Below, piece after piece: positions 1,729-18,501 of a stretch of 64,000 bases of DNA. Under the pieces are notes generated by a model. That model worked only from the letters and a program-made list of their open reading frames with translations. It did not search any database and was not told the DNA's origin. The DNA is taken from positions 211,971 to 275,970 of the IMG/VR virus record IMGVR_UViG_3300047157_000197; one strand, 5' to 3'. The number at the start of each line of letters is the position of its first letter. Positions within the stretch are counted from its first letter, which is position 1. Made by a program: the position numbers and the translations under genes.

Positions 1729-1743
1729 TTTCGTATATTTGTA
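1710..1743 (+). promoter_or_regulatory. Bacteroidota sigma70-type promoter
   Basis: TTTG-N20-TATATTTG directly upstream of 1751. Confidence 0.7.
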
Positions 1744-1750
1744 AGTAGAT

Positions 1751-2203
1751 ATGATATTAATAGCACATAGAGGAAATATAAATGGTAAGGTTGAGAAGTT
1801 TGAAAACACTCCAAGTTACATAGATTCTGCTATTGAACAAGGTTACGATGTTGAAGTAGATTTACGATATCATCAACATGAATTTTGGTTAGGACATGAT
1901 TATGCAAAATATGAAATTAATTTAAAATGGTTAACTGATAGAAAAGATTCTTTATGGATACATTGTAAAGATTTAATAACAATTGATATGTTAAGAGAAT
2001 TACAGATTCATAACAAAGTTGATTTACATTATTTTTTCCATAATGATGATGATTGTACGATAACTTCAAAAGGAGATTTGTGGGTTTATCCAGGAAAACA
2101 ACCAGTAAAAAATAGTATAGCAGTAATTCCAGAATGGCATCGAGATGATGTTAGTTTATGTAAAGGAATCTGTTCAGATAATATAATAAATTTTAAAGAA
2201 TGA
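1751..2203 (+). CDS. GDPD/PLC-like phosphodiesterase domain protein
   Basis: IAHRG, EN, VEVDL, LGHD, WIHCK motifs. Confidence 0.75.
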   Translation: MILIAHRGNINGKVEKFENTPSYIDSAIEQGYDVEVDLRYHQHEFWLGHDYAKYEINLKWLTDRKDSLWIHCKDLITIDMLRELQIHNKVDLHYFFHNDDDCTITSKGDLWVYPGKQPVKNSIAVIPEWHRDDVSLCKGICSDNIINFKE

Positions 2204-2634
2204 GTAAAATAGGATTTACAGCAGGTAACTTTGATTTACTACATCCTGGTTACATTTATACTTTTGAAGAAGCAAAGAAACATTGTGATAAGTTTTTTGT
2301 ATTTCTACACGCAGACCCATCTGAATATAGAAATAATAAATACAAACCAGTAGTTCCTTTATATGAAAGGTATAAAACTCTAATGGCTATTAAATACATT
2401 GATGCAGTTTATACTTACAAAACAGAGGAAGAATTATTAGATTTAATTATACATTGGAAACCTGATATAAGAATATTAGGTGAAGATTATATTGGGAAAT
2501 CATTTACAGGAGATGAATTACCTATTGAAGTTATTTACACTACTCGTTCACACGAATGGTCAACAACTAAAATTAAAAATCTAATTACAAAACAAACAAT
2601 TAAACAAAATCCTGATATACTAAAAGATGAATAA
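2200..2634 (+). CDS. TagD/RfaE-type cytidylyl/adenylyltransferase
   Basis: GNFDLLHPGY (HIGH-like), GEDY, STTKIK. Confidence 0.8.
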   Translation: MSKIGFTAGNFDLLHPGYIYTFEEAKKHCDKFFVFLHADPSEYRNNKYKPVVPLYERYKTLMAIKYIDAVYTYKTEEELLDLIIHWKPDIRILGEDYIGKSFTGDELPIEVIYTTRSHEWSTTKIKNLITKQTIKQNPDILKDE

Positions 2635-3829: not shown

Positions 3830-4242
3830 CCTTATTATCATTATTGGAAAGTGATTTGCCATTTTTAATTGAAGTTAGAAATGATGAATCAACTCGTTCT
3901 CAATTAGGAAATGATTCTTTATTTACATTAGAAGATTCTACACAATGGTTTAAAAAAGAACAACCAGAGTGGTTACTTATTATAAACCATAATTTAACTA
4001 GAATCGGATACATGAGAATAGATGGTGATACAATTGGTATTGATATTCATCCTAATTTTCGTAGAAAAGGATATGCAAGATTGGCATATCAAAAATATTT
4101 AGAAGATACTGATTATGCAGACCTTTGGGTTTTTGAAGATAATCATGCTAAGAAACTATATGAAGAATTAGGATTTGTAGAAACAGGTGAATACGAAACG
4201 TTAAGAGATAGAAAGTATTTGAAAATGATATACGAAAAATGA
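3820..4242 (+). CDS. GNAT N-acetyltransferase (PseH-like)
   Basis: FRRKGYA acetyl-CoA loop, N..AKKLYEELGF; follows the aminotransferase. Confidence 0.8.
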   Translation: MEVTLLSLLESDLPFLIEVRNDESTRSQLGNDSLFTLEDSTQWFKKEQPEWLLIINHNLTRIGYMRIDGDTIGIDIHPNFRRKGYARLAYQKYLEDTDYADLWVFEDNHAKKLYEELGFVETGEYETLRDRKYLKMIYEK

Positions 4243-4949
4243 AAGTAGCATTAATGTTGACAGGACTTGCTAGAAAAGTTCAAGAAGGATATGATGGTTT
4301 TTGGAAATATATTATTGATAATAATGATGTGGATTTATATCTTCATGCTTGGGAATCTAAACCAGATGAAGTAACTAATAATGAAGATAGTGATATTGTA
4401 CATCAAGTTTATCCAAATGCAACTTATGTTAATATTGAGAAACCTTTTAAGTTCACAAAATACAGAGAAGGTATAAAAACACCAAGAGATGATAAATCAA
4501 GACCTCTTACAGATTTTGATGTATTCAGTAATTTTAGAAGTTTTCCTATGTATTATTCTTGGCAATCTACTTATGAAAATATCAAATCTTCAAACATTGA
4601 TTATGATTGTATTATAAGAAGTAGATACGATATTGGTGGAGATAATTTAAATATATCTGAGTTTGATTTAAATAAAATATTCACATCAAATCATCATTGG
4701 AAAAACAGTCATGTTCACGATGATAATTTTTACATATCAAATCAAAGTAATTCTGATAAAGTATTTCCTACTATATTTGAAAACATAGTTGAATTTAATA
4801 GAAGTAAAGGTATGATGGATAGTGCAGAAGAAAATCTAACTAAGTACTTAGAAAGAATAGGATTAATAAATATCTCAGAAAAATCAGATAAAATAAAATT
4901 TGATTTATTAAGAGATAATAAAGTTTGGTGGCCAAAAGATATAAAATGA
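4239..4949 (+). CDS. putative glycosyltransferase-like protein
   Basis: KVALMLTGLAR, YLHAW, YDCIIRSRYD pattern seen in capsule-locus proteins. Confidence 0.5.
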   Translation: MKVALMLTGLARKVQEGYDGFWKYIIDNNDVDLYLHAWESKPDEVTNNEDSDIVHQVYPNATYVNIEKPFKFTKYREGIKTPRDDKSRPLTDFDVFSNFRSFPMYYSWQSTYENIKSSNIDYDCIIRSRYDIGGDNLNISEFDLNKIFTSNHHWKNSHVHDDNFYISNQSNSDKVFPTIFENIVEFNRSKGMMDSAEENLTKYLERIGLINISEKSDKIKFDLLRDNKVWWPKDIK

Positions 4950-5620
4950 AAATAGGAATTAACTTAGTAGGAGTATCTTATAACAATGCAATAACTGGTG
5001 GACGTTTACGAAACTATGAAGATGCAATAGAAAACTTTCATACTTACATTGTAGAACCATTTAGAGAAAAGGGATATAATGTCCAATTTTATTTATATAG
5101 TTACGAAAATGAAAAACAAGATAAGATAATAAACGATTACAGACCTTGTATGAAATCGCAATTCGTAAAACCAGATTATAATAAATTAGGTGGTGGGACA
5201 AAAGTTTCTGAAGGATACAAAGTTATGTCAGTTAGTTATCTAAATAGTTTAGAACAATTAAAGAATCAAGATTTAGATTTAATTATATCAACTAGATACG
5301 ATATTAAGTTTCTTAAAAATCCATTTGAAGAATATAATTTTGATTTTGATAAAATGAATTTCTTATGGAGAGAACCAGAACTTAAAGATTTACCATTAGT
5401 TAATGATACTTTTTTGGTATTTCCATATAAAATGTTAGATAATGTTGTTGATTCTATAATTGAAATGGAAGAAAATCCACCACAAGGTAAAAATATAGCA
5501 ATGCATAATTGGTATTTACCCATGGTAAATCAAGTTGGAGAAGATAAAGTACAATGGGTTGACGATGAATTCAGAACCGCAATACAGAATGAGTTATACA
5601 TATTAACAAGAAAGACATAA
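4946..5620 (+). CDS. putative glycosyltransferase-like protein, paralog-like to 4239
   Basis: KIGINLVG, DLIISTRYD; likely start ATG 4946. Confidence 0.45.
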   Translation: MKIGINLVGVSYNNAITGGRLRNYEDAIENFHTYIVEPFREKGYNVQFYLYSYENEKQDKIINDYRPCMKSQFVKPDYNKLGGGTKVSEGYKVMSVSYLNSLEQLKNQDLDLIISTRYDIKFLKNPFEEYNFDFDKMNFLWREPELKDLPLVNDTFLVFPYKMLDNVVDSIIEMEENPPQGKNIAMHNWYLPMVNQVGEDKVQWVDDEFRTAIQNELYILTRKT

Positions 5621-5623
5621 TAT

Positions 5624-6382
5624 ATGAATAAATTAATAAGTGGATATTGGTGGGCATGGAAAGAGATAGAAGCAGGAAAGAAATCTATGCAAACTCTAAG
5701 AAAGTATTATCCTGATGCTGATTTGTTTATTAATGTAGATTATGAAGGTGATGTAGATGGTTATACCAAAGTAGGTAAAGAACTAAATGCAACAGTTACT
5801 CGTAATAATTTTCAGTTAGGATATTGTGGAAACTTTGGTGATAGAGATATAGGATATGATTATTGGTCAAAAGAAAAAGCAGTAGAATGGTTAAGAGGAG
5901 TATATGATGCTTGTACTAAAACTGATTCAAAGTATATGATGTTGTTTGAAGAAGATGATTTTGTATTAAAGAACATCTCAATCTTAGATACAGATTTTTC
6001 AATAGCAATTCATCCAACTGCACCATCACCAGTTAGAATGAGACCAAATCTAATACCAAAACAGTTTTTAGATTATTCTAAAGAGATTGGTGGTATTGGA
6101 GATTGTCCTGGTTATGCAAGTGGTGGGGGAACTATTTTTAATAGAGAACATTATATGGATAGTTACGAAAGAATATTAGATAAGTTTACAGATGTATATG
6201 ATGATTTCTGTAAAATAAATAAAATATTTGGTTGGGAAGATTTTTTATTCCAATACATTTTTATGTTAGGTGGATATGAAGTTACACAAAATCATGATTT
6301 ATGTGAACTATGGGAAGTACCAAACTTTGAGGGATTTGAAATATTAACTGGTTGTAAAGACCCAAACTTAATTACACTATAA
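5624..6382 (+). CDS. putative GT-A glycosyltransferase
   Basis: YMMLFEEDD (DxD-like), GGGTIF, GWED. Confidence 0.5.
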   Translation: MNKLISGYWWAWKEIEAGKKSMQTLRKYYPDADLFINVDYEGDVDGYTKVGKELNATVTRNNFQLGYCGNFGDRDIGYDYWSKEKAVEWLRGVYDACTKTDSKYMMLFEEDDFVLKNISILDTDFSIAIHPTAPSPVRMRPNLIPKQFLDYSKEIGGIGDCPGYASGGGTIFNREHYMDSYERILDKFTDVYDDFCKINKIFGWEDFLFQYIFMLGGYEVTQNHDLCELWEVPNFEGFEILTGCKDPNLITL

Positions 6383-7191
6383 TGGATGATGATACTTACA
6401 CAATACTAGGTTGTATTACAAAATATAAGGCAGATGATATAAGACCTTATGTAGAATCAATTGAACAGACAGGTTTTAAAGGTAGAAAAGTAATGTTGGT
6501 ATATGATGTACCACAAGAAACTATTGATTATCTTAAATCAAAAGGATGGGATTTGTTTGGAGGAGAACTTCAACAACATATAATCTTACAGAGGTTTAGA
6601 GATTTATATAAACTATTAGGTTCAGAAATAAAAGGTACAGTTATTTGGACTGATGTTAAGGATGTGATATTTCAAAAAGACCCAACTGATTGGATTGAGC
6701 ATAATATGGAAGATGATATATTATCATTCTCAGAATGTATCACATTTAAAAATGACCCTTGGGCGTGTGTAAATGCAGGAACTTCTTTTCCTATGGAGTG
6801 GGAATGGTTACAAAATAAAACATCTTATTGTGCAGGAACTATCGTTGGTGATGCTTGTTATCTTAGAGATTTATTCATCGATATTTACAGATGGAGTATG
6901 ACAAGTTCAAACCCAGGCCAGTTATCAGACCAAGCAGCTTATAATGTGTTAATTAACTTACATCATATTAGTGATTGTGTTCAAACAGTAAAACAGGAAG
7001 AGGGATTTGTTACCCAATTAGGAACTGTGTTGGTAAAGAAAGATGAGTTTAAAGATGTTCTATTAGAACCAACACCAATCGTAGATGAAAACTATATAGT
7101 AAAGAATCAAAATGGAGAACCTTTCTGTTTAGTACATCAGTACGATAGAATACCAGCATTTAAAGAATTTATTTATAACAAATACAAATAA
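6382..7191 (+). CDS. putative GT-A glycosyltransferase
   Basis: WTDVKDVIFQ, SDQAAYN, HQYDR. Confidence 0.6.
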   Translation: MDDDTYTILGCITKYKADDIRPYVESIEQTGFKGRKVMLVYDVPQETIDYLKSKGWDLFGGELQQHIILQRFRDLYKLLGSEIKGTVIWTDVKDVIFQKDPTDWIEHNMEDDILSFSECITFKNDPWACVNAGTSFPMEWEWLQNKTSYCAGTIVGDACYLRDLFIDIYRWSMTSSNPGQLSDQAAYNVLINLHHISDCVQTVKQEEGFVTQLGTVLVKKDEFKDVLLEPTPIVDENYIVKNQNGEPFCLVHQYDRIPAFKEFIYNKYK

Positions 7192-8084
7192 TGAAAGTAG
7201 TAATATCAATTTTCTGTTTACCATATGAGATAGATGATTTGGAAAATACACTAAATCAACTAAAGAAGGCATCTTATTATATAGATAAAAAAATAGATTG
7301 GTGTTTAGATGTAACGATGTGTTTGGCAGATGATATGGTAAATTGGAATAAATCATCTTTACCAAAGAAGTTTTTTGAAGATAAATTATTAAAATTATTA
7401 TCAATAACAGATTGGTGTACGAAGAATATTCAAACTTCAACAGAAATAAAAGGATGTGTATCTCAGAGAAGATATTCTTTAGAAAAACATAGAGAAGCAG
7501 ATTACTTTATTTGGTTAGATACAGATATTATATTTGATGAAAGAACGTTGTTCTATATCGAACAAAGTATAAAAGGTACAAATAAAGATTATTTACAAAC
7601 AATCATTACACCAGAAATTGTTAGAGTTTGGGATAATACTTGGGATTGTATTGTAAATGAACAATTCTTAGATAAACCACTTGAATATCAAAAAACAAAT
7701 GACCCTTATAAAGATAGTGGTATCAAAGGAGATATTAGTATTGTACCTGTAAATAATTCAAACTCCCCTCAATCAAGATTTAAATTTGCAGGAGGATGGT
7801 TCACTTGTATAAGTGGAAAACTTCTAAATAGAATTGGAATACCAGATTCATTTGCTCACTATGGTTATGAAGATACCTTTTTAATGGTGGGTAGTGAAAA
7901 ACTCGTTAGAGAACAAAATGAAGAAATTCATCAATTCAAAATAAAAAACCTAGTAGTTTGTGAAAACTACAAATATAGAGGACATTATCATTACCTAAAT
8001 TCTCTCTCAGTTTACGATAGAAGAGAGGAATTTAAAAAAATATCCCATGATAATTTCATATCAGAAGTAAAAATAATACAATAA
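7191..8084 (+). CDS. putative GT-A glycosyltransferase
   Basis: FIWLDTD, GGWF, YGYED. Confidence 0.55.
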   Translation: MKVVISIFCLPYEIDDLENTLNQLKKASYYIDKKIDWCLDVTMCLADDMVNWNKSSLPKKFFEDKLLKLLSITDWCTKNIQTSTEIKGCVSQRRYSLEKHREADYFIWLDTDIIFDERTLFYIEQSIKGTNKDYLQTIITPEIVRVWDNTWDCIVNEQFLDKPLEYQKTNDPYKDSGIKGDISIVPVNNSNSPQSRFKFAGGWFTCISGKLLNRIGIPDSFAHYGYEDTFLMVGSEKLVREQNEEIHQFKIKNLVVCENYKYRGHYHYLNSLSVYDRREEFKKISHDNFISEVKIIQ

Positions 8085-8284: not shown

Positions 8285-8794
8285 TTGAAGTACGCTACAT
8301 TAAATGTATTTAAAATATTCATTTTATGTATCTTTGTTTTATTACCGACAGGTTCTAATGAGATACATACAAGTGATGACAACCTCATTAAAGTCGGTGA
8401 AGTGACCAACGAAATCCGAATGGGACAGTTTGCAGGTAACCGAAACCTAGCAGTTGGTGTCAAGAATATCCTCGAAGAATTATTAATGGATTTAGATTAT
8501 GATTTATCAGACCAAGCATCTACGCAAATAAATGTAAGATTGGTCTTTTTTGATATAAAAAATATTGGAACATCGGTTGCGGTGTTTCATAAAGATGTTT
8601 CATTAACGCAAATTATTGCGATTGGTGAATTAGAAGTCAAGGGAAAAGTTAAAAAACGTACTACTCAAAAAGGAACGAGTAAAACAATTTCTACTAGTAC
8701 TCTTGTAGTTGCACAAGACGGAACATTTAACCAACAAACAGCCTCAATTGCTTTAAAGAAAGTATGTGAGGCAATTATTAAGGATTTATTATGA
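8285..8794 (+). CDS. exported CsgG/HfaB-like (TolB-N fold) protein
   Basis: TTG start with GGAG; hydrophobic signal; LAVGVKNILEELL...SIALKKVC pattern parallels 11855. Confidence 0.45.
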   Translation: MKYATLNVFKIFILCIFVLLPTGSNEIHTSDDNLIKVGEVTNEIRMGQFAGNRNLAVGVKNILEELLMDLDYDLSDQASTQINVRLVFFDIKNIGTSVAVFHKDVSLTQIIAIGELEVKGKVKKRTTQKGTSKTISTSTLVVAQDGTFNQQTASIALKKVCEAIIKDLL

Positions 8795-10440
8795 AAAAAA
8801 TTTTATTATTATTAATTAGTGTATTTTTTACACTATCTGTATCTGGTCAGAATGACCCCGCTGAGATAAATTATAGTCCAGTAAATACAGTAACAAAAGT
8901 AGGGGATACTTTAGTTATGAAGTTCCAATACAACAAACAAGATGGAGGAGATTTGACATTAGCTCAATTCGATTTCGAATATAACAACAAATTGTTATCT
9001 TACATCTCAAGTACCTCACAAGCACCAACAGGTGCATCATTTGCTAGAAACAATTGGACAGGGTATAAGTTTGTACCTAAAGCAAATACATCAGAAGATG
9101 ATATGGATGTACAATACACTTGGTGGAAAGATGAAGCAGGAAATGCTTCCTATTCTACTTCTGCTGATTGGAGTGTAGAGAGAACTACAATCCAAACCTC
9201 AGCTGCATACGAAGATGGTGGAGAATTTGTAAAGTATAGCTTCAAAATAAAGGATAAGTTTGGTAGTGGGTATGATAACTACAACAATATCATTAAAGTG
9301 AATTGGGCAAACTACCAAAAAGCAGATGGAACAAAAATTCAAACTATTAAATCACCATCTACACAATCACTAAGTGGTATCGAGGGTGGTAATGCTGGTG
9401 CATTTACTATTAACCTTAAAACTGCAAATTCAACTAAAACAGATTATTCTTATACTATTAAGAATGGTGCAGGTGAATCAGTTGCAACTGGTACTTTTGA
9501 TGAAAGTGGACAAGCATCTGTAAGTGGTTTAGAAAACAACGTAACTTATACTGCTGAAGCAAACTTAGCCGAAGATGCAACTTACTTAGATGAAGTAGTT
9601 ACTGTATCTGATTTGGCATTAGTATTCGCTGAAGCAATTGGAGCAGGTTCTGGTCCAAGTGGTGGTTCAACTACATTTGATTATTTCATACAAGATATAA
9701 TGGGTGATGTTGTTGGTAGTGATAATGGAGTAGATTTCCAAGATTCATATGAGATACTTGCTTACCTACAAGGTGTAACAAGTGGTAATACAAACTTAAT
9801 CACACAAGATGGACAAACGGAAGATTATAGTGGTATTGAATCTACATATGGTGCAGTTACTAATAATACAGTAACCTTCGCTAAATCATTCACACCAATT
9901 GATTCAGATGCTACTTCTAAAACAATTGATTTAGCTCATGGTTTAAGAGGTGATGTAAATTTCTCTCACTCATGGGAGCCGAGTGTATCAAGTGGTGAAA
10001 AAGCAACATCAGCTCAAACATCATCATTTAGAATATCATCGGCAGCTGGTTCTAAATATAGTCAAACAGAAACAGCAAATATCGATTTAATATCTGAAAT
10101 AAATGATGATGGAAGAGTAGTATTTTCAATTAATTCTGAGATTGAAGATATGGTTGGTTCTCAGTTTAATATCGTATATGACCCTAACATATTATCTTTA
10201 GAAAATGTAATATTTGATACTGGTAATGAAATGACTAACTTTTCAAACGTAATCGAAGCAGGGTATGTAAGAGTTGGTTCATTTGACCAAAATGTTAGTT
10301 CAACAGTTAAAGCAGGAACACCATATCAATTAATATTTGTTCCAGTTGAAGATATATCAAATGCATCAGGTTTAATTTCGTTTAGAGTTAAAGAAGGTGT
10401 AAAAGCAGATGGAACACAAATTAATTTTATAATACAATAA
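8791..10440 (+). CDS. secreted protein with N- and C-terminal cohesin-like domains and a dockerin-like Ca-binding region
   Basis: Signal peptide; AQFDFEYNNKLLSY and SQFNIVYDPNILSL cohesin-like strands; VTVSD, GDVVGSDNGVDFQDS, GDVNFSH. Confidence 0.65.
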   Translation: MKKILLLLISVFFTLSVSGQNDPAEINYSPVNTVTKVGDTLVMKFQYNKQDGGDLTLAQFDFEYNNKLLSYISSTSQAPTGASFARNNWTGYKFVPKANTSEDDMDVQYTWWKDEAGNASYSTSADWSVERTTIQTSAAYEDGGEFVKYSFKIKDKFGSGYDNYNNIIKVNWANYQKADGTKIQTIKSPSTQSLSGIEGGNAGAFTINLKTANSTKTDYSYTIKNGAGESVATGTFDESGQASVSGLENNVTYTAEANLAEDATYLDEVVTVSDLALVFAEAIGAGSGPSGGSTTFDYFIQDIMGDVVGSDNGVDFQDSYEILAYLQGVTSGNTNLITQDGQTEDYSGIESTYGAVTNNTVTFAKSFTPIDSDATSKTIDLAHGLRGDVNFSHSWEPSVSSGEKATSAQTSSFRISSAAGSKYSQTETANIDLISEINDDGRVVFSINSEIEDMVGSQFNIVYDPNILSLENVIFDTGNEMTNFSNVIEAGYVRVGSFDQNVSSTVKAGTPYQLIFVPVEDISNASGLISFRVKEGVKADGTQINFIIQ

Positions 10441-10458
10441 TAAAAAGGAAACAGAAAA

Positions 10459-10836
10459 ATGAAAAAAATATTAACATTACTTAGTTTGGTTTTAATAATG
10501 GGTTGTTACCAAGATGATGATTTAGTAACACTTTATCCAGACCAAGAAGTACCACAATCTTTACAGATTAAAGATTTGATTGGTATTAAATTAGAAAACA
10601 CTATCGTAACTGATAGAGTTGCGATGAATGTAAAATTACCACTTGATGGTAAATATAGAATAAAGATTAGACATGGTATGACCAATGAACTAATCTCACA
10701 AGAGATGATAACTGCTGGTGAGGGTGATAACCTTCTTAAAGTGTATGTTGCATCTTTAGAGAAAAGTGGTTATGTGATTCAATTAACAGATGAATTTCAT
10801 AATATATTAGGAAATCAGTCTTTCGTAGTAAATTAA
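10459..10836 (+). CDS. small lipoprotein with T9SS CTD-like Ig domain
   Basis: Lipobox IMG-C; YRIKI...GDNLLKVYVASLEKSGYVIQL pattern. Confidence 0.5.
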   Translation: MKKILTLLSLVLIMGCYQDDDLVTLYPDQEVPQSLQIKDLIGIKLENTIVTDRVAMNVKLPLDGKYRIKIRHGMTNELISQEMITAGEGDNLLKVYVASLEKSGYVIQLTDEFHNILGNQSFVVN

Positions 10837-10837
10837 A

Positions 10838-10975
10838 ATGTTAAATAGTATATTTTTAGTGTCAGTTGGATTTATTACAATGTGGTTAGTATGTAAGTAC
10901 GAAATAACAAAATGTAAAATTGGTAAATCATGTGATTGTAAAGAATGTAGAGAAAAAAGGAGAGCAAAATTATGA
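10838..10975 (+). CDS. small membrane protein with Cys-rich tail
   Basis: 45-aa ORF read by eye: one TM then CxCxxC. Confidence 0.4.
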   Translation: MLNSIFLVSVGFITMWLVCKYEITKCKIGKSCDCKECREKRRAKL

Positions 10976-11274
10976 GTGAAAAAAAAGAAGGATTCTTTGC
11001 ACAAATAAAGAATCAAGTAATAGCTGGGGTTGGTATAGTACTAACTACATTGGGTGGTGTTTTTATAGATGAGGTTAAATCATTTGTAGGAATAGAAGAT
11101 GATTCAGAACCACAAACTGAGGTTGTACAAGAAAACAATCAATCAGTAAATGTAGAAGGACCTACTATCGTAGTAAACATACCAGAACAACAGGTAAAAG
11201 AAAAAGTAATTATCAAGGAAGTTAAAGTTCCTGTTAAGAAGAAAAAAGAAAAAGAACAAGAAATTGATTGGTAA
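10972..11274 (+). CDS. single-TM hypothetical protein
   Basis: One hydrophobic helix, GGAG upstream. Confidence 0.6.
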   Translation: MSEKKEGFFAQIKNQVIAGVGIVLTTLGGVFIDEVKSFVGIEDDSEPQTEVVQENNQSVNVEGPTIVVNIPEQQVKEKVIIKEVKVPVKKKKEKEQEIDW

Positions 11275-11292
11275 TTTAAATAAAGGAGAAAA

Positions 11293-11520
11293 ATGAGTAG
11301 TTTCAAAAAATGGTGGAAAGTAAATGGACAAGGTATCGGATTTATAGCTGGTATAGTGTTTCTAAATGCTTACTTTTTAATATTAGGTGATTTAATGAAC
11401 AAACACGAATGGTTAGCTGGTGTTTGGTTATTATGTTTCTTTGGATTTGCAGGATGGTATTCTTGGCAAATGAAGATTCATGGTTGGAGATTGCCTAAGG
11501 ATATAAAAGATACCCACTAA
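11293..11520 (+). CDS. small 2-TM membrane protein
   Basis: Two hydrophobic segments; AAGGAG upstream. Confidence 0.6.
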   Translation: MSSFKKWWKVNGQGIGFIAGIVFLNAYFLILGDLMNKHEWLAGVWLLCFFGFAGWYSWQMKIHGWRLPKDIKDTH

Positions 11521-11556
11521 CGTTTAATATTAATACATGGAGAACAATGATAAACA

Positions 11557-11751
11557 ATGGAAGTAATAAAACAAATTTTCGGAGATAAAATGTCAGACTA
11601 TAAAATAGTTGATATTATGTTGAAAATATGGGTTGCTGGTTTATTATCTATGGTTGTACTTGGTTTAGTTGCTGTGATTAGTCACATCATCATGAACCCA
11701 TCATCAGTAGATAACGCAACATTTGGTGTATTTGATACACTAGGGAGTTAA
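11557..11751 (+). CDS. small membrane protein
   Basis: One TM; start uncertain. Confidence 0.5.
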   Translation: MEVIKQIFGDKMSDYKIVDIMLKIWVAGLLSMVVLGLVAVISHIIMNPSSVDNATFGVFDTLGS

Positions 11752-11854
11752 ATATGAAAAGAATTATAGAATTAATAATCAAGATAGATGATTGGGTAAT
11801 GAAATCATTATATGATATATATCCAGAATTAACCAAACATCAGAAAGATAAAAA

Positions 11855-12574
11855 ATGAGAAATATATTTATTTTAATTTTATGTGTATTATTCACACAAA
11901 ATACTATTGCACAAACTGTTGGTAAAATCAAGGCAGAAACATATCAAGCTGAATTTGAAAAAAAGAAATCAATTGATGATGTATCTGATTACGATGGTCC
12001 ATATATTCCTATAGCTTTACTTAATATATCTGCTAGTGATGGGGTTTACGAAATGTGGCCTGAGTTAAAGGATGCTAGAGTAGGTTTAGGTGTAACAAAC
12101 ATGGTAATAGAGTACTTGGATTGGACAAACAGATTCGAGTTCGTAGAGGAGAAGTCAGAGATTAAGGATAGAATGAAAAATCAATGGGTTGCATCAAGAA
12201 AGGGTGTTTCTCAAAATGAAGTTTATGGAATGGGTAAAGTAATGTTGGCGAATTATTTCGTTACAATAGAGATTTACGATTTCTCAGTTTCAGAAGATGA
12301 GGTTTTATCTTTAAAAGATGGTTCTAAACAAACACAAACAACTCGTTTAGGGTTGCAAGTTCGTTTTACTAATGCCGAGAATGGTACTTACTTTGTAGGT
12401 TCTGGTCTAGGTGAAGCAAATACAGTTAAGACTCAAGAGGGTTTGCTGGGATTAGATTTGGAGGAAATAAACTTCAGACAATCAGCAATTGGGGTAACTA
12501 CCAGAAAAGCATTAGAAACGGCTTCAGCAAGAATAGTAGCAAGAATGATTAGAAAAAAAATATTTCCAAACTAA
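11855..12574 (+). CDS. CsgG/HfaB family protein (curli secretion-channel-like)
   Basis: Signal peptide; GVTNMVIEYL..TNRFEFVEE, ANYFVTIEIYDF, LGLQVRFTNAENG match the CsgG fold pattern. Confidence 0.7.
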   Translation: MRNIFILILCVLFTQNTIAQTVGKIKAETYQAEFEKKKSIDDVSDYDGPYIPIALLNISASDGVYEMWPELKDARVGLGVTNMVIEYLDWTNRFEFVEEKSEIKDRMKNQWVASRKGVSQNEVYGMGKVMLANYFVTIEIYDFSVSEDEVLSLKDGSKQTQTTRLGLQVRFTNAENGTYFVGSGLGEANTVKTQEGLLGLDLEEINFRQSAIGVTTRKALETASARIVARMIRKKIFPN

Positions 12575-12577
12575 TGA

Positions 12578-14353
12578 ATGAGAAAACTACTATCGATACT
12601 TGCATTTTGGTTCATAACTAATCTTAGTTATGGACAAACATTCACACAGACATTTGTAGATAGATGTACTGGTGAAGTACAAGTTGTTACCGCTAATTTT
12701 ACAAGTGGTTCTGCTATCGTATCCTTTTACAACGAAGCTAAATTATTCACATACACACAATATACTAATGGTGAACTCCAACAATGGTTAGTTCAGAAAT
12801 ATGCATGGTGGGCTGCACTATCCCCATGTTCATCTGCGAGTAACGCAACCAACAACGCTAATAATACTGCAAACAACGCAACCAATAATACCAATTCAGG
12901 TTCAAGTGGTTCTAGTGGTGGTGGAGATAGTGGTTCAAGTGGTTCATCAGGTGGTAGTGGAGATAGTGGTGGTGGAAGTGGAGATTCAGGCGGTGGAGGT
13001 TCTGATGGTGGAAGTGGAGATTCTGGTGGCGGTGGTTCTGATGGCTCTGATGGTGGTGGTGGAGATTCTGATGGAGGAGGAGGCGATTCCGATGGCGGGG
13101 GTGGTGATTCCGATGGTGGCGGTGATTCCGATGGTGGAGATAGTGATGGTGGGTCTGGTGATTCCGATTCTGATGGTGGAGATAGTGATGGTGGAGATAG
13201 TGATTCTGATTCTGATGGTGGAGATAGTGATTCCGATTCCGATAGTGATTCTGATTCCGATAGTGATTCTGATTCCGATAGTGATTCTGATTCTGACTCT
13301 GATGGCGATAGTGATGATGATTCTGATTCTGACTCTGATGGCGATAGTGATGATGATTCTGATGGGGATTCTGATGATGATTCCGATGGAGATAGTGATG
13401 ATGAATCTGATGATGATTCCGATAGTGATGAAGATTCTGATGAATCTGATGAAGATAGTGAAGAAAGTGATGAGGAAGATAGTGAAGAAGAATCCGATGA
13501 AGAAGAAAAGGAAGAGGAAGAAGAAAGTGATGAAGAAGAGGAAGAAGAAGAAAAAGAGGAAGAAGAGGAAGAAGACGATGAAGAAGAAGATGAGGAAGAA
13601 GAAGATGAGGAAGATGAGGAAGATGAGGAAGACGAAAAAGATGAAGAAGATGAGGAAGAAGAAGAAGAAAAGAAAAAGAAATTTATGCCAATAGTATTGA
13701 AGGCAGATGTAATGTCAATGCAAGCTCTAACAAGAGAATACAACCAAGTTCTTGCAATTGGAGCATCACAAGCATCAATCTATGGTGATATAACAAATAC
13801 AGCAACTTTACAAGTATATGATAACTTAAAACAAGTTGGGTTATCATTGGGTAGAAGTAAAGTAAGTTTGAATGAAAATTATCAAGTAACTTGGGTAGAT
13901 GGAGCAAACGTATCTTATATGAGAAATTATCAGATGAACTCAACTACATTATCTCTCAGTAGAATGAAACCAATGGGTAAGTATGGAACTGTTGGATTGG
14001 GTGTTAGTTATTCATTTATGTTTGGTAAAGATGCTCTTGGAAATACAATGCCAAAAATGGGTACTATGGGATATAATGTTCTTTATACAAATATGGTAAA
14101 AATAAATGATAGAATAATGTACACACCAGCATTGATTGGTGCACAAAACCCATTATCTTATACAGAAAAAGTTGAGGGGTTCGATGCCTTTTCATCAACA
14201 TCAAAAGATTTTATAGGAATCCTTGCAAATTCCTTTACAATACAATTAACAAAAAGTTTTTCGTTTAATGCAGGTTGGACGATAATTTATAGTAGTAATG
14301 AGTTTGTTCCAATTATGAATTCGTTTATGATAGGAGCAAAGTTACCCTTTTAA
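12578..14353 (+). CDS. exported protein: N-terminal domain, Gly/Ser/Asp then Asp/Glu stalk, C-terminal beta-barrel-like domain
   Basis: Signal peptide; about 260 aa of low complexity; about 220 aa of amphipathic strands ending in terminal Phe (GAKLPF). Confidence 0.65.
   Translation: MRKLLSILAFWFITNLSYGQTFTQTFVDRCTGEVQVVTANFTSGSAIVSFYNEAKLFTYTQYTNGELQQWLVQKYAWWAALSPCSSASNATNNANNTANNATNNTNSGSSGSSGGGDSGSSGSSGGSGDSGGGSGDSGGGGSDGGSGDSGGGGSDGSDGGGGDSDGGGGDSDGGGGDSDGGGDSDGGDSDGGSGDSDSDGGDSDGGDSDSDSDGGDSDSDSDSDSDSDSDSDSDSDSDSDSDGDSDDDSDSDSDGDSDDDSDGDSDDDSDGDSDDESDDDSDSDEDSDESDEDSEESDEEDSEEESDEEEKEEEEESDEEEEEEEKEEEEEEDDEEEDEEEEDEEDEEDEEDEKDEEDEEEEEEKKKKFMPIVLKADVMSMQALTREYNQVLAIGASQASIYGDITNTATLQVYDNLKQVGLSLGRSKVSLNENYQVTWVDGANVSYMRNYQMNSTTLSLSRMKPMGKYGTVGLGVSYSFMFGKDALGNTMPKMGTMGYNVLYTNMVKINDRIMYTPALIGAQNPLSYTEKVEGFDAFSSTSKDFIGILANSFTIQLTKSFSFNAGWTIIYSSNEFVPIMNSFMIGAKLPF
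12896..13670 (+). repeat. coding low-complexity repeat: (GGGDSD)n, (SD)n, poly-D/E
   Basis: gattct/gatagt/gattcc hexamers then gaagaa/gatgag runs. Confidence 0.95.
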
Positions 14354-14362
14354 GGAGATAAT

Positions 14363-14893
14363 ATGAGAAAAATAGATTTTAAATTAGTAGTAATAGGTAT
14401 ATTGATAGGAGTATCAGTATGGCAATTTTTAAACCCAACAATACAAGAAGTAGAAAAGATTAAAGAAATCGAAGTACTTCAGACTGTAATTGATAGTATC
14501 TATGTTGAAAAACTGATAGAGAAGAAAGTTTTTGTACCAAAGTATATTACAAAAATAAAAAGAGATACTATAATCAAAGAAGTAATTGTAGAAAAAATTA
14601 AAACTAAAATCAAAAAGGTTTATATAGATAAACCATATGAAGTAATCGTACCGAAGTATGAATTACCAGAATCAAAGTGGTATGCTGGATTTGCATATCA
14701 ATGGGATATGGAAAATTACTTTAGTGGAGCAAATGTACAAGTTTTACATAAATTCAAAAATGATAAAATGTTTAGTATAGATGTTGGATTTAGAAACGAT
14801 TTAATAGATTTAGAAAATAATCTTGGAAAATTAAGACCTTATGTTGGAGGAACAATATATTTCAGATTAGATAAACCAAAAGATAATTTTTAA
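14363..14893 (+). CDS. N-terminally anchored protein with beta-stalk and C-terminal beta strands
   Basis: TM, IEKKVFVP/DTII repeats, alternating-hydrophobic C-terminus. Confidence 0.55.
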   Translation: MRKIDFKLVVIGILIGVSVWQFLNPTIQEVEKIKEIEVLQTVIDSIYVEKLIEKKVFVPKYITKIKRDTIIKEVIVEKIKTKIKKVYIDKPYEVIVPKYELPESKWYAGFAYQWDMENYFSGANVQVLHKFKNDKMFSIDVGFRNDLIDLENNLGKLRPYVGGTIYFRLDKPKDNF

Positions 14894-16986
14894 TGAAGAA
14901 ACTTCTTTTCATATTATTACTGTTACCAACTTTAGTATTTGGTCAGACCGGTGCTGGTTATACTCCAAGTGGTGAAGGAAAAATAAATTATAAATCCTAC
15001 AAAACTCACTCTGGTAATGGTGCAGCATCATCTTATAATAGTGTATCATATAGTGGTGGAGCAGGTTCAACTGCTGAGTTTGATGCAATGGTTGATACAA
15101 ACCAACCAGGTACAACATTAACTCATGTTGGTGAAGCAACACCATGGAGTTCAGGTGGTTTAAATGGAGGACACCCACCGAGATGGGGTAATTCGTATTT
15201 TGCAATAGTTTATTCAGGTTGGTTCAAACCAAATAAAAATGGAACTTATAATTTCAAAACTTATGCAGATGATTCATCAGAAACTAGATATAGAGAAGTA
15301 GGAACTACTACTTGGCAAACAATTACATTTCAATGGGGTTGTTGTTCTAATCGATATGGTACTGCAAATTTAGATAATACTAAATGGTATGAATTTGAAT
15401 TTAGATACCAAGAATATGGTGGAGGGGATTATTACTATTTTGGTTATTCAATACCAGCAAATTCAAGTTCACCAAATTACAATTGGATAAGTTCCAATCA
15501 TCAATTTGGAACTTGGACAAATGTAGACCCAAGTGGTGGAACAACTACTACAACAGAACCCGAAGTTGATTTAGATTTAGAATTCCATTCTCAATTAGCA
15601 CCAGAACAATATAGATTTGGTGTGTATTATGATGCATCAAATGAACAAGATGGTTCAACATATTTCAATACTTCTACAATGAATTCAAAATATTATTTAG
15701 ATGATGATGGAAGTAAAGATATAACTGATTATCTAAATTTGGTTAAGATGACTGATGGTTTGAAAGCAACCACAGAAAGTGGAAGTGTAGAGTGGGTAGT
15801 TTTATATCCATATGATTCTACAAACGATAGACATCGAATACTGATTGATGGTAGAGAATTTACTGCTACTAATCCTGATACAGACCCAAATGATTTAAAA
15901 TCATTACAATTACTTGATTTATATGATGGAACAATTACTGTTCATAGTGTAAGTGAGGGTTCGGGTGGTTGGCAACAATATTACATACCAGGTAATCTAA
16001 CAACTGCTATATCTAATAGTTCATATGGAAGTGGTGTGATTAGAAATGCTGGTAGTTATTTTGGTATTAGAGCAGAGTTCTCATTTGAAGATGTTGAAAT
16101 ATATAAAGGACATAAAATAGTTGTTAATAATCCATCTGATAATATAGAAGGGTGGACAGCTGAAGAATTTATGGATGATTACATTACAGTTGCAGATGTA
16201 GTTGCAGGATTTAATGAATTAGCAGGTGGTGGAATATTCGGTGGATATAAAGGAGATTTGAATGGAGTTCAATTACAAAACTCAGATGTTAATCAAGATG
16301 GTGAGTTTGATTTTCAAGATAGTCAAATAGGATTGGCTTTCTTAAATGGTGATGATACTCCTTTTAATGGTTACCTACAAGAGATAATGAGAATAGTTCC
16401 TAAATCAGAATACGATAATACTACAACTACTAATTGGAAAACACAAACAAATAAATCACCATCAACAAATTTTACCTTTAGTATTATAGATACGATACAA
16501 ACCTTAGAATATAAAGTTTCATTTATAGGTGATGTAAATCTTTCACATTCTGCACCACAATCAACAAGTTCACCTGGTACTCAATCAACATCAGTCAGAA
16601 ATTCATCTTCTCAAAAATCAAGTGAATTAGAAGTGTTGTTAGATATTGGTATGGAAGAAGATAAACTTGTGGTAACATTAGATGTACCACAAAACAATCA
16701 TAACATTGTAGGTTCTGAATTTAGAATAGGATATGATAACACTAGAGTGGAGTTTGATAGAATAGAAACTACTTCTAACTTACAATCATTTTCAGCTGAA
16801 AGAACAAACTACATAAAGTTAGGTTCTATATCTACTGATGGTTCTCAAAATTTAAATGGTGGTGTACAATATAAGATTTACTTTTCACCACAACAAACTT
16901 TTGAATCTATATTAGGATTACTATCAGTTACAAAATCAGAATTAGTAAAACAAAATGGGGGTGGAATAGACCATAAAATAAAATGA
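14893..16986 (+). CDS. secreted PA14 + dockerin-like + cohesin-like protein
   Basis: Signal peptide; PA14 motifs YSGWF, GTYNFKTYADDS, YQEYGGGD; ITVAD, SDVNQDGEFDFQDS, GDVNLSH; SEFRIGYDNTRVEF; C-terminal half paralogous to 8791. Confidence 0.7.
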   Translation: MKKLLFILLLLPTLVFGQTGAGYTPSGEGKINYKSYKTHSGNGAASSYNSVSYSGGAGSTAEFDAMVDTNQPGTTLTHVGEATPWSSGGLNGGHPPRWGNSYFAIVYSGWFKPNKNGTYNFKTYADDSSETRYREVGTTTWQTITFQWGCCSNRYGTANLDNTKWYEFEFRYQEYGGGDYYYFGYSIPANSSSPNYNWISSNHQFGTWTNVDPSGGTTTTTEPEVDLDLEFHSQLAPEQYRFGVYYDASNEQDGSTYFNTSTMNSKYYLDDDGSKDITDYLNLVKMTDGLKATTESGSVEWVVLYPYDSTNDRHRILIDGREFTATNPDTDPNDLKSLQLLDLYDGTITVHSVSEGSGGWQQYYIPGNLTTAISNSSYGSGVIRNAGSYFGIRAEFSFEDVEIYKGHKIVVNNPSDNIEGWTAEEFMDDYITVADVVAGFNELAGGGIFGGYKGDLNGVQLQNSDVNQDGEFDFQDSQIGLAFLNGDDTPFNGYLQEIMRIVPKSEYDNTTTTNWKTQTNKSPSTNFTFSIIDTIQTLEYKVSFIGDVNLSHSAPQSTSSPGTQSTSVRNSSSQKSSELEVLLDIGMEEDKLVVTLDVPQNNHNIVGSEFRIGYDNTRVEFDRIETTSNLQSFSAERTNYIKLGSISTDGSQNLNGGVQYKIYFSPQQTFESILGLLSVTKSELVKQNGGGIDHKIK

Positions 16987-17321
16987 GAAAGTATATAGTA
17001 TTAATATTGTTCGTTATACTATCTTGTCAACCAGAAGAGTTGATGATTGTAGAACCACTACCACAATACGAAATGATATTTGAAGAATCTGAATCATCAG
17101 TAACAGATGGACAAGAATTTTCTTTTGAAATAATATCAGAAGAAGAACATCATTTAGTTATATCAAAAGATGGTTCTGTTATTACAAAAGAATCATTTTT
17201 ACCTACACTTGAATTGAATACAAGAAAGATTTATACTAAATCACTTCCTACTGATTTGTTACAATTGGAACTAATTAACTCTAATGGTGTTATAAAATCA
17301 ACTTTTATACAAATATATTAA
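16983..17321 (+). CDS. small lipoprotein with T9SS CTD-like domain, paralog of 10459
   Basis: Lipobox ILS-C; NTRKIYTKSL aligns with NLLKVYVASL. Confidence 0.5.
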   Translation: MRKYIVLILFVILSCQPEELMIVEPLPQYEMIFEESESSVTDGQEFSFEIISEEEHHLVISKDGSVITKESFLPTLELNTRKIYTKSLPTDLLQLELINSNGVIKSTFIQIY

Positions 17322-17853: not shown

Positions 17854-18501
17854 ATGTTCATATTCACAGAAGAAAATATAAAAGATATTAAGAATGCCGT
17901 TTACACAACAGATGGTATAAAGGATAAGCATGTGAAAAAGATTGAAGGAATCAAAGATGGTTTGTTCAAAGATTTTAATTACTCTAAATACAAAGTAAAA
18001 AATCCCCCTAAAAATAATTCAATGGTAGTTTATAATGAACTACAATTCTTAAAAGATTTACCAGAAGATGATGCATATGTTGAAGAACATGATGATATTG
18101 AAAAAGTATTTGAGCAAGTTTGTAAAGAAAACAACGTAGAATATCCAAAGGAACTCGTAGAGAGTTTAATCAAATCAGCCGCTGGTATTATATTAGATTT
18201 AAAATATCACTATAATAGACCAAGACCATTTCAACTTTCTAGCCATTATAATATTAAATTAGGTGAAAAAGTATTGGAATCAATGAAAACACCATCATAC
18301 CCATCAGGACATTCAGCACAAGGTATTTTAGTAGGGAAGGTACTACAAACTAAATTACCAATCAATACAGATGCCTTTTTGGAAGCAGGAAAACGAATAT
18401 CATATAGTAGAAATATAGGAAGAGCACACTATCCATCTGATTCAAGAATGGGTGAGATTATTGGTGATGTTATGTTTAACCATATAAAGCACAAGATTTA
18501 A
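17854..18501 (+). CDS. PAP2/vanadium haloperoxidase-superfamily phosphatase
   Basis: KYHYNRPRP, SYPSGH, SRNIGRAHYPSD. Confidence 0.85.
   Translation: MFIFTEENIKDIKNAVYTTDGIKDKHVKKIEGIKDGLFKDFNYSKYKVKNPPKNNSMVVYNELQFLKDLPEDDAYVEEHDDIEKVFEQVCKENNVEYPKELVESLIKSAAGIILDLKYHYNRPRPFQLSSHYNIKLGEKVLESMKTPSYPSGHSAQGILVGKVLQTKLPINTDAFLEAGKRISYSRNIGRAHYPSDSRMGEIIGDVMFNHIKHKI

Follow-up and report, generated by a model that had tools for sequence, protein, structure and literature searches.

Can a sorting domain of a bacterial secretion system be cut loose from its cargo and encoded by a phage as a separate, lipid-anchored protein? We were led to this question by a 64,000-nt stretch of a 276-kb marine phage genome (here called the window; IMG/VR record IMGVR_UViG_3300047157_000197, positions 211,971 to 275,970), in which two large ORFs are each followed by a small lipoprotein gene. 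The preliminary description had read the region as a duplicated two-gene unit: a cohesin/dockerin protein with a variable N-terminal head on a shared C-terminal scaffold, followed by a lipoprotein resembling the C-terminal domain (CTD) that is fused to cargo of the Bacteroidota type IX secretion system (T9SS). It inferred that the sorting or anchoring domain had been split off, to act in trans as a lipid-anchored partner or as a decoy for the host T9SS, with interchangeable heads on a common stalk. As shown below, we could confirm what had been seen, whereas only part of how it had been explained is supported.

Two large genes, each followed by a small lipoprotein gene

All four ORFs are present at the coordinates where they had been described. 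Together with their neighbors, they form the following arrangement, in which L1 and L2 denote the large proteins and sA and sB the small lipoproteins (numbers are window positions):

8285..8794, plus strand: g8285, 169-aa protein with a signal peptide, overlapping L1 by 4 nt
8791..10440, plus strand: L1 (ORF 8791), 549-aa secreted protein, signal peptide aa 1-20
8854..9384, plus strand: L1 head, aa 22-198, predicted cohesin module
9403..9567, plus strand: L1 aa 205-259, predicted small Ig-like sandwich at the place of an X-module, between cohesin and dockerin
9598..9780, plus strand: L1 aa 270-330, predicted three-helix dockerin-like element, with TVSD and the acidic loop D-V-V-G-S-D-N-G-V-D-F-Q-D
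9823..10065, plus strand: L1 aa 345-425, beta insert, then the near-invariant motif GDVNFSHS (aa 387-394), then a disordered Ser/Thr-rich linker (aa 395-425)
10066..10437, plus strand: L1 aa 426-549, predicted C-terminal cohesin-like jelly roll
10459..10836, plus strand: sA (ORF 10459), 125-aa lipoprotein; lipobox IMGC with Cys16, then Y-Q-D-D-D, then a predicted CTD-like 7-strand sandwich at aa 42-125 (nt 10582-10833)
10972..11751, plus strand: three small membrane proteins (100, 75 and 64 aa)
11855..12574, plus strand: g11855, 239-aa protein with a signal peptide, possibly CsgG/HfaB/LpoB-like
12578..14353, plus strand: g12578, 591-aa protein with a signal peptide, a roughly 260-aa acidic Ser/Gly/Asp/Glu low-complexity tract and a beta-rich C-terminal part ending in Phe
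14363..14893, plus strand: g14363, 176-aa protein with an N-terminal membrane anchor, overlapping L2 by 1 nt
14893..16986, plus strand: L2 (ORF 14893), 697-aa secreted protein; PA14/GLEYA-family head at about aa 18-410, canonical dockerin-type loop D-V-N-Q-D-G-E-F-D-F-Q-D at aa 466-477 (nt 16288-16323), GDVNLSHS at aa 544-551 (nt 16522-16545), C-terminal cohesin-like domain at about aa 578-697
16983..17321, plus strand: sB (ORF 16983), 112-aa lipoprotein; lipobox ILSC with Cys15, then Q-P-E-E-L

L2 and sB overlap by ATGA, while L1 and sA are separated by TAATAA plus 15 nt, 18 nt in all. Scans for promoters and terminators returned fewer sites than expected by chance and revealed no operon boundaries.

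To test whether the two large proteins are related, we aligned them by BLASTP and obtained a single collinear alignment with 27% identity over 305 aa (E 6e-12), covering aa 249-549 of L1 and aa 412-697 of L2. In contrast, the N-terminal parts do not align. A six-sequence alignment retained the motifs of the preliminary description in order: TVxD, the D-V-x-x-D...F-x-D loop, GDVNxSHS, a Ser/Thr linker and the C-terminal domain. Across 72 sequences, D388 of L1 is invariant, and G387, S392, H393 and S394 are nearly so.

The relationship between the two lipoproteins is more distant. Their similarity was not significant pairwise (E 0.13), nor in a profile-to-profile comparison once signal peptides had been removed (probability 3%). 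However, it became significant when diverged relatives from other phages were added as intermediates (hhalign probability 91.7%, E 7.9e-7 over 70 columns, mature parts only). We therefore consider sA and sB to be remote homologs.

The genome contains exactly two copies of each kind of gene. While the preliminary description spoke of a duplicated unit, a recent duplication can be ruled out, since the two units are only 27% identical and both types occur in distant lineages; they are ancient paralogs. Other lineages arrange them as L-L-sB-sA, or with genes inserted between.

Predicted domain architecture of the large proteins

An AlphaFold (AF2) model of L1 (pLDDT 90.5, pTM 0.81) predicts an N-terminal cohesin, an Ig/X-like module, dockerin-like helices, a flexible linker (pLDDT below 50 at aa 416-421) and a C-terminal cohesin-like domain. 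The N-terminal module matches the nine-strand jelly-roll fold of solved type I/II cohesins (VIA-align Z 13.0-13.7, rmsd 2.4-2.6 Å over about 133 residues); the head of L1 is itself a cohesin. For the C-terminal part, the Foldseek hits in the PDB are cohesins (E 1e-8 to 1e-5, TM by target up to 0.70), with this module contributing to both cohesin-dyad and single-cohesin hits. The scaffold ends at the C-terminus in nearly all full-length hits listed. At the sequence level, neither L1 nor L2 gave a Pfam cohesin (PF00963) hit, but two relatives, P0398 (24.5 against a cut-off of 24.1) and P0419 (24.8; at aa 43-181), exceed the gathering score, and PF00963 is precomputed in some orthologs.

The evidence for the dockerin-like element is thinner. 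A dockerin has two tandem calcium-binding loop-helix repeats within about 70 aa. The L1 model shows helices at aa 272-285, 300-305 and 316-327. The first calcium-binding-type loop is canonical in L2 but degenerate in L1, and the second loop-like motif, GDVNxSHS, lies about 70 aa downstream and has no helix. Pfam Dockerin_1 was detected in 2 of 6 scaffold members (best E 0.0026), with E 0.86 in L2 itself. A search of PDB sequences with the scaffold profile gave a group 2 dockerin at E 0.61 and otherwise only noise (FtsX, E 0.015).

The closest solved arrangement is the end of the cellulosomal scaffoldin CipA (CohI9-X-DocII, PDB 3KCP/4FL4), to which the L1 model aligns over aa 23-327 and 22-392 (Z about 13) with the same module order: cohesin, Ig-like X module, dockerin-like helices. 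L1 differs in that it has no enzymes or CBM, is a phage gene with a Gram-negative host, carries an atypical dockerin and possesses an additional C-terminal cohesin-like domain.

In support of interchangeable heads, many different heads sit on one common stalk: 209 clusters at 50% identity, with cohesin, PA14/GLEYA, C-type lectin and LCCL heads. The head homologs of L2, P0398 and P0362, pass the Pfam PA14 cut-off.

The small lipoproteins resemble T9SS sorting domains

We next asked whether the lipoproteins have a CTD-type fold, a point on which the earlier interpretation had been staked. The model of sA (pLDDT 79) is a seven-strand sandwich whose best matches in AlphaFold DB are overwhelmingly the terminal 90-100 aa of T9SS cargo (TM 0.6-0.7). 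Against solved structures, however, the fold is generic: complement MG and Ig domains score Z 10-11, while the solved CTDs 6za2 and 8qb1 score Z 9.4 and 8.8.

Profile searches gave no match above the curated cut-offs. Neither sA nor sB gave a hit to TIGR04183 or PF18962 even at E<=1, and no PF18962 match exists anywhere in the phage genome. Relatives do score, but below threshold (13-18 bits against a cut-off of 27): PF18962 in 6 of 14 and 7 of 10 family members and TIGR04183 in 3 of 14, with best E-values of 4.1e-5 for Pfam and 1.6e-4 for TIGR04183. Of the late motifs of type A CTDs, a G-x-Y strand and a Lys-rich last strand, sA keeps S-G-Y (compare L-x-x-G-x-Y) but ends F-V-V-N, sB has neither, and sB relatives end K-T-T-I-I-I-K. 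Like a type A CTD, the domain is about 85 aa long and lies at the very C-terminus of a Sec-exported protein. Unlike one, it has no passenger, the protein comprising only a signal peptide, a lipobox, about 25 aa and the domain. PorA of P. gingivalis was considered as a CTD-only precedent but rejected, because it has a FimH-like passenger domain.

There is an alternative in which sA and sB are ordinary Ig-like lipoproteins of the DUF3244 type (PF11589; BT_1867, PDB 4G5A), whose resemblance to CTDs is merely a shared fold and which work with other members of the block, such as the CsgG-like or the acidic beta-rich protein, and not with L. Indeed, DUF3244 scores as well as PF18962 (4 of 14 members, best 23.8 bits against a cut-off of 25), the structure 4G5A is similar in size and fold (Z 8.8), bacterial clusters of about 120 aa combine DUF3244 and PF18962, and hhalign of the lipoprotein profile against one genuine CTD, from a Cytophagales MAG, was not significant. 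DUF3244 is a bacterial family of free-standing small CTD-like proteins with no known pairing with cohesin/dockerin proteins. In view of the AlphaFold DB matches, the fused forms described next and the matching gene counts, we regard this reading as unlikely, though not excluded.

Fused forms exist in bacteria and in other phages

Bacterial models named T9SS C-terminal target align over aa 22-548 of L1 (E down to 2e-20) and leave 90-113 aa beyond the aligned part, and viral clusters of 631-632 aa carry PF18962 in 96-98% of members, together with cohesin and dockerin. In addition, a Bacteroidota cluster has PF18962 in 77%, dockerin in 67% and cohesin in 20% of members. In contrast, none of the 150 listed relatives of the scaffold has a fused CTD. 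The description of the domain as split off is therefore a fair one, this lineage having a split form.

Sequence-based scans of bacterial genomes were less informative: the scaffold profile found no relative, and the lipoprotein profile found only a fragment beside an N gap in a scaffold of the Cytophagales MAG.

A conserved export motif and conserved linkage

Both lipoproteins carry, behind the lipobox, the type of surface-export motif found in Flavobacteriaceae, K-(D/E)2 or Q-A-(D/E)2 at +3 to +5 (PMC5080379). Among sA relatives, C-x-[K/Q]-D-[D/E] is present in 117 of the 117 with a detectable lipobox (of 120), and among sB relatives, C-Q-[P/K]-[E/D]-[E/D] is present in 102 of 102 (of 108), although the motif is weaker in distant sB relatives (5 of 36). 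This predicts T9SS-independent display on the cell surface and so points away from trans-acting T9SS sorting as originally proposed.

The genes co-occur in about 90 phage loci, as L-s or L-L-s-s, within a conserved envelope block. We counted 20 loci ordered L-sA and 28 ordered L-L-sB-sA. In 30 of 88 loci the small genes were not found beside L in the stretch examined, which speaks for the DUF3244-type alternative; where they are displaced, they still lie 1-1.7 kb downstream. The counts of L and s match, and their types co-vary.

For an initial glimpse at a possible L-s contact, we predicted complexes of L1 with sA. Three runs gave ipSAE values of 0.54, 0.40 and 0.48 against 0.00 in three controls, which we take as weak support for binding only; one of the three runs places the partner elsewhere. 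The predicted interface lies on the cohesin head, where the residues involved are more conserved than the rest of the head (0.49 against 0.31, p 0.006), whereas the lipoprotein side is not conserved. Moreover, this interface cannot be the same in L2, whose head is PA14-like.

A tentative model of phage-directed surface display

Our favored, though tentative, explanation is that the region holds two ancient paralogous L-s pairs inside a conserved envelope module of a Bacteroidota-infecting jumbo phage. In this view, the CTD has become a separate gene in this lineage and has gained a lipobox plus the surface-export signal. The lipidated s would be placed in the outer membrane, probably facing outward, where it would bind its cognate L non-covalently and hold it at the envelope, such that a lipid anchor replaces the covalent T9SS/PorU attachment. 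The cohesin and dockerin-like modules could additionally link L molecules to one another. The likely purpose would be to coat or remodel the surface of the infected cell with glycan-binding proteins, for example to mask receptors against superinfection or to change adhesion. What our analysis shows is the homology of the scaffolds and of sA and sB, the cohesin folds (in models), the PA14, lectin and LCCL heads of relatives, the similarity of the sA model to terminal CTDs with sub-threshold profile hits, the existence of fused forms, the lipobox and export motif, and the linkage with its start/stop overlaps; lipidation, surface exposure, L-s binding, cohesin-dockerin docking, T9SS-related action in trans or as a decoy, and the purpose are all inferred. 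Arguing against the model, L has only a Sec signal, which leaves its passage across the outer membrane unexplained if s faces outward. Metatranscriptome contigs cover the region only at low depth and may derive from DNA, and GroEL was uninformative for assigning a host.

A second possibility is that the lipid-anchored CTD mimic engages host CTD-handling proteins (the PorV shuttle, the SprA/Sov translocon or the PorU attachment complex) and jams secretion, stripping the surface of T9SS-delivered adhesins that serve as phage receptors and thereby giving superinfection exclusion. Besides the CTD-like fold, the sub-threshold CTD profile hits and the canonical-looking CTD tails of sB relatives, this would fit with the phage resistance caused by mutations in gliding and T9SS genes of Flavobacterium (bioRxiv 10.1101/2020.10.02.323337; PMC9804748), and the phage carries no fused PF18962 domain of its own that such a block would harm. 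Yet a decoy explains neither the conserved 1:1 linkage and type-matching with the large proteins nor the predicted L-s contact; the export motif suggests that the domain ends up outside the cell and not in the periplasm, where CTDs first meet the translocon; and the domain has drifted below the family thresholds. We consider this role unlikely, although it remains possible.

Less likely still is a trans-acting T9SS signal, in which s binds L in the periplasm and its CTD-like domain carries the complex through the host T9SS, with the lipid sliding into the outer leaflet. The fold, the fused relatives, which presumably use the T9SS, and the weak complex prediction would be compatible with it. 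However, we found no precedent in the literature searched for piggy-back T9SS export or for export of a lipidated CTD, the strictly conserved export motif points to a different route, and sA and sB fail the CTD profiles.

Taken furthest, the data would allow a speculative and rather unlikely scenario in which jumbo phages of Flavobacteriia carry a self-contained surface-display kit: cellulosome-like cohesin/dockerin scaffold proteins with exchangeable lectin heads, a T9SS sorting domain cut loose and turned into a surface lipoprotein that serves as their anchor or as a T9SS-jamming decoy, and the phage's own CsgG-like channel and accessory membrane proteins. The infected cell would then be given a new, phage-specified outer surface, in what would be the first case of a secretion-system sorting domain converted into a trans-acting lipoprotein and of cohesin-dockerin assembly used by a virus.

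T9SS sorting domains are known only as covalent tails of cargo. A widespread, conserved, free-standing and lipid-anchored version, paired with the former passenger, would show that the domain can work, or be repurposed, in trans, and would provide a natural tool for probing CTD recognition. The findings also point to a large, abundant group of marine and freshwater phages that invest about 10 kb in proteins for the host envelope; as these carry lectin-type heads, they bear on superinfection exclusion, aggregation and particle attachment of Flavobacteriia in the sea. Nothing similar turned up in the GenBank phage collection, which gave no match to near-identical DNA or tblastn searches, or in the literature searched, and the "Moraphage" paper does not mention this module. 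A possible functional analogy for receptor masking is offered by the phage lipoproteins T5 Llp and Cor, which are also small and targeted to the host outer membrane; these act alone, on a TonB-dependent receptor, and are unrelated in sequence and fold as far as tested.

Neighboring genes of the envelope block

The presence of small lipoproteins near g14363, with its membrane anchor and charged, repetitive middle part, raised the possibility of lysis genes, with sA and sB as o-spanins and g14363 as the i-spanin; an M23 peptidase lies upstream of the block in the related loci L003 and L004. We consider this very unlikely. The lipoproteins are predicted compact beta sandwiches with a surface-export motif that follow 549-697-aa genes, unlike small Pro-rich o-spanins, and are never adjacent to, or embedded in, an i-spanin-like gene. 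Moreover, g14363 is absent from lineages that keep L and s.

For g11855, the similarity to CsgG is a lead only. It rests on an Atlas feature score of 0.94 to CsgG clusters and a TM of 0.56-0.66 for the model of its cluster, while neither Pfam nor a profile search of PDB sequences gave a hit, and the protein has no lipobox. PHROGs returned nothing for any of the eight genes searched, apart from a low-complexity artifact in g12578. Among other ORFs, the C-terminal part of g12578, the 297-aa ORF that follows L2 in locus L086, and the 98-aa and 116-aa ORFs downstream of L2 in loci L066 and L084 gave no family match, and the L086 ORF is not similar to g12578.

The three small membrane proteins behind sA, which show hydrophobic segments in their translations, are conserved within the block by tblastn synteny. 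Protein g8285 showed no similarity to g11855 or g14363, and its profile gave no PDB sequence hit. It always precedes the first large gene, a position conserved in the related loci L003-L006 and L011-L013 as well as in the IMG/VR loci, and a 217-aa relative gives a weak hit to the lipoprotein family PF03923 (E 2e-4).

Two large genes, each with a small lipoprotein gene

The 64-kb window forms the end of a 275,970-bp IMG/VR virus record rated complete by CheckV, has about 30% G+C, and carries its genes on the + strand. In the last 2-4 kb (window 60001-64000), at the end of the linear record, GC skew falls to about zero and G+C rises to 36%. Among other phage-typical genes, the window encodes a full-length GroEL-type chaperonin (42646-44262; PHROG E 3.6e-172; about 55% identical to those of Bacteroides phages) and a DNA methyltransferase (47041-48402). 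Near-identical and diverged copies are abundant in marine metagenomes, Tara included, many on contigs of about 276 kb, whereas no GenBank phage in the collection searched holds a relative of the large protein described here.

The genes of interest are as follows.
8791-10440 (+): L1, large protein of 549 aa with a signal peptide
ORF 10459 (+): sA, lipoprotein of 125 aa
14893-16986 (+): L2, large protein of 697 aa with a signal peptide
ORF 16983 (+): sB, lipoprotein of 112 aa

L1 and L2 both start with Bacteroidota-style signal peptides and share one collinear C-terminal alignment (27% identity over 305 aa, E 6e-12), while their N-terminal parts do not align. The C-terminal motifs that the preliminary description had seen in the same order in both proteins are conserved in register in a six-sequence alignment and in 72 sequences; D318, D388, G496, F516 and G527 are invariant, and G-D-V-N-x-S-H-S is nearly so. 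The two small ORFs both have lipoboxes. Their mutual similarity is not significant pairwise (E 0.13), nor profile-to-profile once the signal peptides are removed (probability 3%), an earlier value of 84% having come from the signal peptides. However, adding diverged relatives from other phage contigs bridges the two families, with an hhalign probability of 91.7% and E 7.9e-7 on the mature parts only. The genome holds exactly two L and two s genes. The observation of a two-gene unit present twice therefore holds, although the two units are old paralogues.

Predicted architecture of the large proteins

A profile of the shared scaffold found 209 clusters (50% identity) among 1.84 billion representatives, 145 of them at E<=1e-10. 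In nearly all full-length hits listed, the scaffold is the very end of the protein; total lengths run from 499 to 878 aa, none has an extra domain behind the scaffold, and all begin with similar signal peptides. The heads fall into an 8791-like group, a 14893-like group and several others, in which Pfam names PA14/GLEYA (the 14893 family), C-type lectin, LCCL and cohesin. With a 72-row alignment, AlphaFold gave a confident model of L1 (pLDDT 90.5, pTM 0.81).

Table. Modules in the AlphaFold model of L1, by residue
22-198: cohesin
205-259: small Ig-like module
270-330: three helices
345-385: beta insert
387-394: G-D-V-N-F-S-H-S
395-425: disordered Ser/Thr linker
426-549: jelly roll

Residues 22-198 of the model match solved cohesins at Z 13.0-13.7, with an rmsd of about 2.5 A over about 133 residues, and the order cohesin, Ig-like module, helices aligns to the CohI9-X-DocII end of CipA (3kcp, 4fl4; Z about 13). 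Foldseek hits are almost all cohesins, with a cohesin dyad on top. Sequence support for the dockerin is thin, Pfam giving E 0.86 in L2 and 0.0026 at best in a relative, and the PDB giving E 0.61, but L2 does carry a canonical D-x-N-x-D-G-x-x-x-x-x-D loop. In short, L1 reads Coh, X-like, Doc-like, linker, Coh-like, and L2 has a PA14-type head on the same stalk.

The small lipoproteins resemble T9SS sorting domains

In a search with the profiles of the T9SS C-terminal sorting domain (CTD), neither small lipoprotein hit PF18962 or TIGR04183, even at E<=1. The sA model (pLDDT 79, seven strands), in contrast, finds in AlphaFold DB clusters mainly the last 90-100 residues of proteins named "secretion system C-terminal sorting domain" or "T9SS type A sorting domain" (TM 0.6-0.7, E about 1e-4). 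Against solved structures the fold is generic, since macroglobulin and Ig domains score Z 10-11 while the CTDs of PorU and mirolase, and DUF3244, score Z 8.8-9.4; a generic Ig-like lipoprotein thus remains a rival reading. The ESM Atlas places both proteins among viral clusters of 113-126 aa, some with PF18962 in 11-55% of members, and the structures of their own clusters match CTDs of Bacteroidota cargo. Across diverse family members, PF18962 appears in 6 of 14 (best E 4.1e-5) and in 7 of 10, always at 13-18 bits against a cut-off of 27; DUF3244 scores similarly, and TIGR04183 appears in 3 of 14. We conclude that the domain is of the CTD kind by fold and by marginal sequence signal, but that it is not a member by the curated criteria and lacks a passenger.

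If the sorting domain was split off, as the preliminary description proposed, homologues in which the two parts are fused might be found, and we looked for these as a test of that proposal. Indeed, the best AlphaFold DB matches of the L1 model are bacterial "T9SS C-terminal target domain" proteins, which align over query residues 22-548 and leave about 90-113 residues behind the aligned part. Examples are proteins of 909 aa aligned at 344-798 (E 2e-20), 895 aa at 253-806, 700 aa at 296-610 and 383 aa at 5-277. In addition, the Atlas shape search finds viral clusters of 631-632 aa with PF18962 in 96-98%, Cohesin in 60-69% and Dockerin in 36% of members, and a Bacteroidota cluster combines PF18962, Dockerin and Cohesin. 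The same passenger therefore exists with a covalent CTD in bacteria and in other phages, whereas the lineage of the window has it as a separate gene, with its own signal peptide, after a TAATAA double stop.

Conservation of the pairing

L1-sA adjacency, and the whole block, are conserved at 53-71% (L) and 66-69% (s) identity in two other lineages, where the block reads 160-aa protein, L, s, three small membrane proteins, 240-aa protein, 580-600-aa acidic protein. The same holds in far more distant contigs. L2-sB is conserved at 47% and 61% identity.

Table. Gene orders in the 88 loci analysed
L-sA: 20 loci
L-L-sB-sA: 28 loci
L-L with no small lipoprotein found in the stretch analysed: 30 loci

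Taken per gene, the 154 scaffold genes were followed by a lipoprotein with HMM and lipobox support in 60 cases, by a second scaffold gene in 62, and by something else in 27. In three of five L-L records checked, sub-threshold PF18962 frames of 126-139 aa lie 1-1.7 kb further downstream. In a distant lineage, probably freshwater, the second large gene is followed with a 1-nt overlap by an ORF of about 230-300 aa with a signal peptide, a C-terminal Phe and no family match, which pushes the small lipoproteins about 1 kb downstream; this was seen in locus L086 (5804-6697) and after L2 in loci L033, L034, L038-L040, L044 and others. The pairing is therefore conserved as co-occurrence in matched numbers and types, not as strict adjacency.

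Predicted route to the surface and predicted binding

After the lipobox Cys, the sA relatives with a detectable lipobox (117 of 120) all read x-[K/Q]-D-[D/E], and the corresponding sB relatives (102 of 108) all read Q-[P/K]-[E/D]-[E/D]. These are the positions and residues of the Capnocytophaga/Flavobacteriaceae lipoprotein export signal, K-(D/E)2 or Q-A-(D/E)2 at +3 to +5, which suffices for surface exposure (PMC5080379). This predicts outer-membrane, outward-facing lipoproteins that do not need the T9SS, and also supports a Flavobacteriia-type host. A trans-acting T9SS signal is nevertheless a possible, if unlikely, alternative. A scaffold of a Cytophagales MAG (L094, 2692-2775) carries a 28-aa fragment very like sA of the distant lineage, right beside a run of N, with a subtilisin-like protein bearing a typical T9SS tail on the opposite strand. 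This may be a mis-join or a phage fragment, and it is too short to use for host assignment.

A predicted complex of L1 (aa 21-549) with mature sA scored ipSAE 0.54, 0.40 and 0.48 (ipTM* about 0.8), against 0.00 for three controls, which rates only as weak support for binding. Two runs put sA on the N-terminal cohesin head (residues 57-180), and one run differs. Head residues in that interface are more conserved than the rest of the head (0.49 against 0.31, one-sided p 0.006), while the lipoprotein side is not.

Taken together, the interpretation given in the preliminary description, of a sorting domain split off as a lipid-anchored partner acting in trans or as a decoy for the host T9SS, is partly supported. 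The analysis itself establishes the folds (as predicted by the models), the homologies, the linkage, the motifs and the existence of fused forms. That s is a lipid anchor or partner which holds L at the outer membrane, and that the module re-coats the infected cell with glycan-binding scaffold proteins, we only infer, as are surface exposure, binding and any action in trans; the largest gap in this tentative model is how L, which has only a Sec signal, would cross the outer membrane. A T9SS decoy is a less likely but attractive rival, because T9SS and gliding mutants resist flavobacterial phages. In the literature searched, we found no description of phage-encoded free-standing CTD lipoproteins or of phage cohesin/dockerin modules. 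While the T9SS CTD and cohesin-dockerin are each known, we regard their genetic and viral setting here as new.

Genes surrounding the two pairs

Within the block, the 239-aa protein with a signal peptide at 11855-12574 resembles CsgG/HfaB/LpoB outer-membrane proteins by Atlas features (0.94) and shape (TM 0.56-0.66) only, giving no Pfam or PDB sequence hit, and is conserved next to the L-s genes in all lineages examined. The adjacent 591-aa protein (12578-14353) has a signal peptide, a conserved Cys-containing N-terminal part, a tract of about 260 aa made almost wholly of Ser/Gly/Asp/Glu, and a beta-rich C-terminal part ending in Phe. Relatives keep this layout with different repeat composition, and the overlapping ORFs 12793-13743 (-) and 12801-13694 (+) are by-products of the repeat. 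Contigs from four seawater metatranscriptome libraries match window 8285-12574 nearly exactly at low depth, one of them spanning the sA gene into the next gene, but this does not prove transcription, as DNA carry-over cannot be excluded.

Nucleotide-sugar and glycosyltransferase-like genes lie upstream of the envelope block. Directly upstream of it, at 346-8084, lies a cluster of nucleotide-sugar genes, comprising a HAD hydrolase fused to a nucleotidyl transferase, a cytidylyltransferase, an aminotransferase and a GNAT acetyltransferase, followed by several ORFs without assignment; relatives carry glycosyltransferase and carbamoyltransferase genes at this position. Just downstream of the second unit, a PAP2-family phosphatase is encoded at 17854-18501, and in the related loci L007 and L008 it directly follows the lipoprotein.
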